Shown here: one piece after another, positions 11,001 through 14,000 of the stretch
Numbering within the stretch: the first letter of the stretch is position 1
Layout of the letters: every line of letters begins with the position of its first letter
Program-made: the position numbers and the translations under genes
Notes under the pieces: model-generated
Told to the model about the DNA's origin: nothing
The model's input: only the letters and a program-made list of their open reading frames with translations
Database searches by the model: none
Origin: Mytilus californianus
Taxonomy: Eukaryota
Direction of reading: 5' to 3'
NCBI RefSeq assembly: GCF_021869535.1
Contig: NW_026262701.1
Location: 111,600,001-111,664,000, forward strand
Length of the DNA: 64,000 bases

Positions 11001-14000
11001 TTCCCATTATACAACACTTTTTTTTTTTCATGTGTTTTCAAATAGTGAAAATTATTATTAATTTGAAATTTTCTTAAAGCAACTTGATGCAAAGTAGAGG
11101 TATAGTTTACTTTTTTGCTTGTATTCCTTTGTTTTCCTGGAGGGATAATGGGATTCTTGATAAATAGGAAAAATAATTCAAATGAAGCCATGATTTAAAC
11201 TTACCAAACATCATGATATAAATACAGATGTTTCATTGATCCCAGCTGTATGTATGAGAAACTTACCAAACATGATGATATAAATACAGATGTTTCATTG
11301 ATCCAGGCTGTATGTATGAGAAACTTACCAAACATGATGATATAAATACAGATGTTTCATTGATCCAGGCTGTGTGTATGAGAAACTTACCAAACATGAT
11401 GATATAAATACAGATGTTTCATTGATCCAGGCTGTATGTATGAGAAACTTACCAAACATGATGATATAAATACAGATGCTTCATTGATCCAGGCTGTGTG
11501 TATGAGAAACTTACCAAACATGATGATATAAATACAGATGCTTCATTGATCCCAGCTGTATGTATGAGAAACTTACCAAACATGATGATATAAATACAGA
11601 TGTTTCATTGATCCCAGCTGTATGTATGAGAAACTTACCAAACATAATGATATAAATACAGATGTTTCATTGATCCAGGCTGTATGTATGAGAAACTTAC
11701 CAAACATGATATAAATACAGATGTTTCATTGATCCCAGCTGTATGTATGAGAAACTTACCAAACATGATGATATAAATACAGATGTTTCATTGATCCCAG
11801 CTGTATGTATGAGAAACTTACTAAACATGATGATATAAATACAGATGCTTCATTGATCCCAGCTGTATGTATGAGAAACTTACTAAACATGATGATATAA
11901 ATACAGATGTTTCATTGATCCAGGCTGTATGTATGAGAAACTTACCAAACATGATGATATAAATACAGATGCTTCATTGATCCCAGCTGTATATATGAGA
12001 AACTTACCAAACATGATGATATAAATACAGATGTTTCATTGATCCCAGCTGTATGTATGAGAAACTTACCAAACATGATGATATAAATACAGATGTTTCA
12101 TTGATCCCAGCTGTATGTATGAGAAACTTACTAAACATGATGATATAAATACAGATGCTTCATTGATCCCAGCTGTATGTATGAGAAACTTACTAAACAT
12201 GATGATATAAATACAGATGTTTCATTGATCCAGGCTGTATGTATGAGAAACTTACCAAACATGATGATATAAATACAGATGCTTCATTGATCCCAGCTGT
12301 ATGTATGAGAAACTTACCAAACATGATGATATAAATACAGATGTTTCATTGATCCAGGCTGTATGTATGAGAAACTTACCAAACATGATGATATAAATAC
12401 AGATGTTTCATTGATCCAGGCTGTATGTATGAGAAACTTACCAAACATGATGATATAAATACAGATGTTTCATTGATCCAGGCTGTATGTATGAGAAACT
12501 TACCAAACATGATGATATAAATACAGATGTTTCATTGATCCAGGCTGTATGTATGAGAAACTTACCAAACATGATGATATAAATACAGATGTTTCATTGA
12601 TCCAGGCTGTATGTATGAGAAACTTACCAAACATGATGATATAAATACAGATGTTTCATTGATCCAGGCTGTATGTATGAGAAACTTACCAAACATGATG
12701 ATATAAATACAGATGCTTCATTGATCCCAGCTGTATGTATGAGAAACTTACCAAACATGATGATATAAATACAGATGTTTCATTGATCCCAGCTGTATGT
12801 ATGAGAAACTTACTAAACATGATGATATAAATACAGATGCTTCATTGATCCCGGCTGTATGTATGAGAAACTTACCAAACATGATGATATAAATACAGAT
12901 GTTTCATTGATCCCGGCTGTATGTATGAGAAACTTACCAAACATGATGATATAAATACAGATGTTTCATTGATCCCGGCTGTATGTATGAGAAACTTACC
13001 AAACATGATGATATAAATACAGATGTTTCATTGATCCCAGCTGTATGTATGAGAAACTTACCAAACATGATGATATAAATACAGATGTTTCATTGATCCC
13101 AGCTGTATGTATGAGAAACTTACTAAACATGATGATATAAATACAGATGCTTCATTGATCCAGGCTGTATGTATGAGAAACTTACCAAACATGATGATAT
13201 AAATACAGATGCTTCATTGATCCAGGCTGTATGTATGAGAAACTTACCAAACATGATGATATAAATACAGATGTTTCATTGATCCCAGCTGTATGTATGA
13301 GAAACTTGCCAAACATGATGATATAAATACAGATGTTTCAGTGATCATGACTGTATGCATGAGAAACTTACCAAACATAATGATATAAATACAGATGTTT
13401 CATTGATCATGACTGTATGCATGAGAAACTTACCAAACATGATGATATAAATACAGATGCTTCATTGATCCAGGCTGTATGTATGAGAATTGTGCCATAG
13501 TTCTGAAGTCTAGGTTCTCCATGTCAAATGTATCAGTTTCCTACAAGAAACAGATTATCAGGGTATATTTTGTCATTGATACTTGTATAGGCAATCACAG
13601 TCAATAAAGAAAAACAATAACATCTGATTACATATAAACTTCTTAATTTAAGTTCCTTTGAACCAATGATTGTGTTTTTTAAACTGTTTTCAGTTTGTAA
13701 AATTAAAAGATCATATCTCGAAGTTAAAGTATGACAAGTACCTGCTCAAATTAAAATTTTAACATCATTCCGATCAAAATAATTTAGAAAACAAAACCCC
13801 TCTCAGTACAAACAGGCTATAATATTAGCATGACAACATTTTTCCCTTGACCTGTTGTTAAGAACTTTTTTGAATTGCATGAATACAATGACACTTAGAA
13901 TTTAATATTGCAGCATAACATTAAACACATTTACACAACAATATAACAATATTTCCTCTAAAAAAAAAAAAAAATTTAACAAAATCTTTGTTGACCAATA

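Follow-up and report, generated by a model that had tools for sequence, protein, structure and literature searches.

A long tandem array in an intron of what, by protein similarity, is the Mytilus californianus gene for the catalytic subunit of DNA polymerase epsilon (POLE) was found to carry 37 copies of a splice donor. It is very probably a splice-junction ('mirage') minisatellite, most likely a neutral by-product that is tolerated through choice of the first donor. The array is built of head-to-tail units of minisatellite size, the unit spans an exon-intron boundary, one of the two end units coincides with the genuine junction of a coding exon, and the splice signals have been multiplied. 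This is a known type of repeat, now in a mollusc, and a large but ordinary example of it. The window, meaning the whole 64,000-nt stretch of DNA that was analysed, has a G+C content of 32% and no N. The features of the array and of its flanking exons are listed below, with a slash marking splice junctions.

14437..14575, minus strand: upstream POLE exon, ending ...TCT GGA AGG / GTAGGT; human residues 1406-1458 (phmmer, 9b8s_A, E 4.5e-16)
13434..13540, minus strand: 107-nt exon that seeds the array; human residues 1459-1493 (phmmer, 7pfo_B, E 2.7e-10)
13428..13436, minus strand: authentic 5' splice site TTG/GTAAGT, donor G at 13433 (join in an RNA contig)
11197..13487 (TRF bounds 11197-13489), minus strand: 62-bp x 37 tandem array (TRF and per-unit table)
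11197-13425, minus strand: intronic units 2-37, with 36 decoy donors (per-unit table)
10578..11196, minus strand: unique remainder of the intron, 619 nt (sequence)
10449..10577, minus strand: downstream POLE exon; human residues 1495-1534 (phmmer, 9b8t_A, E 1.5e-08)

Seven exons on the minus strand were colinear with human POLE, covering residues 821-854, 854-902, 1333-1380, 1380-1411, 1406-1458, 1459-1493 and 1495-1534, and as judged from these matches the gene is the POLE orthologue. The protein evidence comes from phmmer comparisons with PDB sequences, made for each exon separately rather than with a joined model. The 107-nt exon translates into 35 residues, followed on read-through by tryptophan and a stop. 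The acceptor of the downstream exon reads ...TATATTACAG/T, so that the split codon TG/T specifies Cys, and exactly two residues (a valine and this split codon) link the exons at 13434-13540 and 10449-10577, a spacing identical to that of the human protein. The conserved reading frame and protein are given solely by donor 1 joined to 10577.

Tandem Repeats Finder (TRF) reported the array at 11197-13489 on the minus strand with a period of 62, 37.0 copies, 96% matches, no indels and a score of 4110, the copy number being that of one assembly. Read in minus-strand orientation, a unit comprises the final 54 nt of the 107-nt exon and then GTAAGTTT. The genuine end of the exon and its donor make up unit 1 (exonic part 13434-13487, donor G at 13433), and units 2-37 are intronic copies of the same exon end and donor. 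An earlier note on this DNA, in which the exon is called exon 32, had proposed both this composition and the presence of about 36 near-perfect decoy 5' splice sites at 11197-13489; the per-unit table agrees with the former, and TRF and the table together with the latter. Its statement that most decoys share the TTG/GTAAGT context also held, the identical 9-mer being present in 29 of the 36, with TTA/GTAAGT in six (units 6, 11, 21, 22, 26 and 27) and TTG/GCAAGT in one (unit 3). GT is kept in 35 of the 36 copies and is GC in the remaining one, and when the authentic donor is included there are 37 donors in total, 30 with the identical 9-mer. Three nucleotides have been lost from unit 29. The exon ends ...GTT TG, and reading on beyond donor 1 gives TGG TAA, an immediate stop, as had been claimed for every later donor. 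The array portion of the intron (11197-13433, 2237 nt) makes up 78% of its 2856 nt (10578-13433), close to the 80% estimated earlier. The GTAAGTTT of unit 37 passes directly into unique intron sequence (10578-11196, 619 nt), and because this unique remainder directly adjoins it, the ancestral intron can be put at about 627 nt. The 62-bp unit was found nowhere else in the 64-kb window. An origin from a dispersed satellite or transposon was rejected, the unit being unique in the window and its exonic part encoding residues conserved with human POLE; for the same reasons the exon itself is taken as the source of the unit.

With so many copies of one donor, the question arises of what marks the true one. 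Unit 5 equals unit 1 across all 62 nt, and the predicted probability (RNAplfold-type) that the donor 9-mer is unpaired was 0.0195 for donor 1 and about 0.02 for unchanged decoys. Local RNA structure was rejected as the discriminator, since the two sets of values are equal. Given that unit 5 is identical to unit 1 and that accessibility is alike, whatever distinguishes donor 1 must be outside the unit, either over 54 nt away on the upstream side, in the 5' half of the exon and the 3' splice site that precedes it, or in the 5'-to-3' succession of donors. No other donor is situated 107 nt from the 3' splice site of this exon.

Evidence on donor use came from RNA aligned to 13240-14650 (upstream exon to unit 4), a proxy for the full array in which exon-to-exon joins are visible only as loose ends. 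The matching RNA runs are labelled 'mollusc metagenome'. One RNA contig from run X15 (2600 nt, depth 17) stops at 13434, and its next 30 letters equal window positions 10548-10577. It joins 13434 to 10577, and donor 1 is therefore spliced exactly to the start of the exon that follows. Another RNA contig and two raw RNA reads join 14437 and 13540. Among the RNA runs over 13240-14650, no contig or read passed from the exon into unit 2, and no product of a decoy donor was seen in the aligned RNA, at a sensitivity that was very low: contigs lose rare isoforms and NMD conceals PTC transcripts, so that low or even moderate decoy use could escape. The raw RNA run of the window species (X21) contributed four reads in total, none of them across the donor. 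Two exon variants of the X15 contig, 14514 G>A and 14536 A>T, were also found in relative C, and for that reason the contig may derive from a relative with a much shorter array. The first donor is thus the one used in the informative RNA contig, possibly a relative's, and rare use of decoys is compatible with the sampling.

The same contig differs from the window at another exon end, reading ...GAACATATCAG/TGAAAT where the window predicts ...GAACATATCAA/TGAAAT (16084-16088 / 14575-14579). The difference affects the last base of an exon and changes Asn to Ser; because of it the alignment ran on over 4 nt of intron, as far as 14579. Together with the two other exon variants it suggests that the X15 RNA came from a relative or from a divergent allele.

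The internal structure of the array bears the marks of turnover. Units 14-19, six neighbours, are mutually identical, and the variant pattern of units 20-24 is repeated in units 25-29, a five-unit higher-order block read from the string of variant haplotypes. Divergence is highest in units 2 and 3, which adjoin the real exon and have 5-6 differences; edge units typically escape homogenisation. Two of the 12 variable columns fall within the 9-nt donor, against 1.7 expected, and the 37-unit table gave no signal of selection on the decoy donors, variable columns being neither enriched nor depleted in the 9-mer.

The array seems to be common to related taxa and variable in length, as expected of a VNTR. 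In relative C the entry contig has a depth of 57, the repeat-core contig 203 and the exit contig 46; the core contig crosses from unit to unit, with just 27 letters on the far side, and the exit contig leaves a unit and continues into sequence orthologous to 11167-11196, mismatching there at 4 of 30 positions. In relative B the depths of the repeat unitigs add up to 387-455, where single-copy sequence has a depth of 13-15, and divergent edge units are present there also, at single-copy depth. These figures suggest about 4-6 units in relative C and about 30 in relative B, both taken from depth ratios, summed contig depth not being a copy number.

The array is one of five that are anchored on splice junctions in a 16-kb part of POLE. 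The other four have units that are unrelated in sequence, and two of them are acceptor-side:

25824-26247, minus strand: donor-side array, 106 bp x 4, with 4 GT[AG]AGT sites; exon part = human POLE 821-854
25027-25293, minus strand: acceptor-side array, 66 bp x 4.1, with 4 identical acceptors; exon part = human POLE 854-902
18027-18610, minus strand: acceptor-side array, 85 bp x 6.9, real exon start at 18092; exon part = human POLE 1333-1380
15305-16101, minus strand: donor-side array, 25 bp x 31.6, with 24 GTAAG sites that begin with the real donor at 16083; human POLE 1380-1411

The arrays at 25824-26247 and 25027-25293 occupy the opposite (5' and 3') ends of a single intron in the region of the catalytic domain. 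The former repeats an exon end (25 residues) plus GTAAGT, and the junction in the latter reads TTTTACAG/GAGACCTCTAGAACTTGACACAGATGGTAT. At 18027-18610 the unit consists of 20 nt of intron end and 65 nt of exon start, and entry from an upstream copy meets stops. The array at 15305-16101, a long donor-side minisatellite in the neighbouring intron, opens with the genuine 3' end of a POLE exon, at 16084 (...CAT ATC AA/GTAAGA), and 23 of its 24 GTAAG sites are decoys, of the form CAA/GTAAGA or CAA/GTAAGT. Of the long arrays in this stretch of POLE a single one, a 147/293-bp tandem array at 16384-17303, has no junction anchor; it is intronic and possibly transposon-derived. A weak 52-bp x 2.7 repeat at 24189-24333 (76% matches) extends precisely up to the acceptor of the exon starting near 24188 (CAG/GATTACTTCACTAATGATCAG), and may be a decayed acceptor-side array that halted at the junction with the exon sequence uncopied.

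Between 10.4 and 27 kb, five of eight arrays straddle a junction where about 1.4 would be expected (Poisson-binomial P ~0.005; 0.001-0.03 under other assumptions, the exon count being approximate). Since there are four sister arrays, and since copy number seems to differ in relatives, the array is best regarded as a general, probably neutral mutational product rather than as a POLE-specific control. Plain neutrality alone is nevertheless insufficient as an explanation of anchoring that is non-random. A further reading, itself rather unlikely, is that junction-anchored arrays in this mussel originate from a mutational process directed at splice junctions, and are not random survivors, with POLE as an example of a hotspot. 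Possible forms include breakage or template switching tied to the co-transcriptional spliceosome or to R-loop formation, or gene conversion from the selected exon copy, which would keep the arrays young.

For the array described here, a neutral mirage history would have begun with the tandem duplication of a 62-bp segment across the exon-intron border (54 nt of exon plus GTAAGTTT). Expansion to 37 units, probably via unequal exchange or replication slippage, would have lengthened the intron from about 0.6 kb to 2.9 kb. After a duplication that straddles a junction, the first copy would stay joined to the remainder of the exon and the last copy to the remainder of the intron, and the gene would be unharmed provided that the first donor is chosen. 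That donor would be picked by exon definition, by a 5'-to-3' rule under which the first functional donor wins, as demonstrated by experiment for the human F7 intron-7 minisatellite, or by both, and the 36 downstream copies would be removed with the intron. Transcripts spliced from a donor further on would meet TGG TAA immediately and are expected to be lost to NMD, as rare noise and not as regulation. The route of growth, the mode of donor selection and neutrality are all three what we infer. The selection mechanism is assumed to apply in a mollusc, and in-vitro work with two strong donors would predict intron-proximal use instead (PMC3413131).

The earlier note had offered two options, strong exon-definition control or a length-tunable, NMD-coupled control on an essential replicase. 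Strong control in favour of the first donor fits the RNA join between 13434 and 10577, the conserved protein and the F7 analogue; for NMD-coupled control no support was found. The latter proposes that some transcripts use decoys, gain TGG TAA and are degraded, so that more units would mean less productive POLE mRNA. Any decoy does give an instant stop, far upstream of later exon junctions, 29 decoys equal the real donor, copy number seems to differ among related taxa, and in vitro strong downstream donors can beat upstream ones (PMC3413131). Against it, no decoy-spliced RNA was seen and the sole informative contig uses donor 1, the decoy donors have no special conservation beyond homogenisation of the array, and decoys are silent in F7 and in amphioxus (PMC1557585, PMC3087553). 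The four other junction arrays in POLE, two of them on acceptors and all with unrelated units, point to a general mutational product, and their presence, together with a copy number that apparently varies widely in relatives, is at odds with a gene-specific conserved poison element. Dosage control of this kind is accordingly considered very improbable.

About equally improbable is a positive role for the array as a platform for U1 binding, whether by aiding recognition of the short upstream exon, by slowing removal of the intron (intron detention of the decoy type) or by suppressing premature intronic cleavage. There are 36 strong U1-complementary sites within 2.2 kb, and a benefit could explain why junction-anchored arrays are over-represented in POLE; yet the acceptor-side arrays of the gene share the architecture and have no U1 sites, copy number apparently varies widely among relatives, and the raw RNA run, very low in depth, had no reads over the intronic units. 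Marginally less probable still is an assembly artefact, in which the 2.3-kb array would be an over-expansion of a locus with far fewer units. Short-read contigs cannot span the array, and its copy number comes from one assembly. Ordered variants, a five-unit block and a 3-nt deletion in a single unit are, however, atypical of a collapsed or inflated repeat, and the repeat depths of relatives B and C given above also argue for a genuine array. The neutral mirage minisatellite is therefore retained as the preferred reading.

The closest relatives of the array in form are the amphioxus mirages (in Adh3, the globins BflGb6/BflGb9, TnC and PGBD5), which are tandem duplications that reach across exon-intron boundaries, at donors as well as at acceptors; their splicing is regular, their length is unstable, and they show concerted evolution with divergent edge units (PMC3087553, PMC3902484). 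Their first report is credited in PMC3087553 to Canestro et al. 2002. As in the mussel, a minisatellite unit lies across the exon-intron boundary and the splice signals are multiplied. The differences are that the host is here a mollusc and there a cephalochordate, that 37 copies are present where the globin cases have 2-6 units, and that five arrays occur here in one essential replicase gene.

A closer parallel for donor choice is the 37-bp VNTR of human F7, the first element of which holds the exon 7-IVS7 junction and is followed by 5-9 identical pseudo-donors; only the most upstream site is used, and the pseudo-donors become functional once upstream sites are destroyed (PMC1557585). No local structure or intronic element accounted for the choice, and the proposal was that scanning proceeds in the 5'-to-3' direction and that exon definition contributes (PMC1557585). 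Both arrays present an authentic donor and then identical pseudo-donors, and in POLE likewise predicted accessibility does not distinguish donor 1. They differ in size (5-9 units in F7, 37 in POLE) and in outcome, in that some F7 pseudo-sites would keep the frame, whereas every POLE decoy leads to an immediate stop; the F7 mechanism, moreover, was tested only in mammalian cells. The general rule invoked in the earlier note, that identical competing donors favour the intron-proximal one, stands for in-vitro substrates with two strong 5' splice sites (PMC3413131) and fails in F7, the natural system nearest to this one, in which it is the most upstream donor that is used (PMC1557585). The POLE array resembles the in-vitro constructs in that a single 3' splice site is contested by U1 sites of equal strength, but the POLE RNA seen uses the distal, most upstream donor, as expected for an exon that is defined in its natural context. 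With regulated unproductive splicing (poison exons or sites coupled to NMD) it shares the feature that an alternative site would insert a premature stop. It differs in having no observed PTC isoform or known regulator, in being a variable repeat and not a conserved sequence, and in an architecture that recurs at unrelated junctions.

As a single locus the array is of little weight, being an unusually long case of a known repeat type in an essential gene that appears normally spliced. Its value is that of a natural experiment, with 37 donors and one decoy unit identical to the real unit over 62 nt. Taken together with the two acceptor-side arrays in POLE, the locus could serve to tell exon definition and directional scanning apart in a non-vertebrate. 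The point most worth following is genome-wide rather than specific to POLE, namely the anchoring of arrays on junctions above chance.

Tandem repeats are plentiful throughout the window, with 29 TRF rows at a score of at least 100. Beyond the part of POLE that was examined, long minisatellites lie at 58905-59950, 50704-51367 and 52991-53815 (35 bp x 30, 34 bp x 14, and units of 136/262/398 bp).
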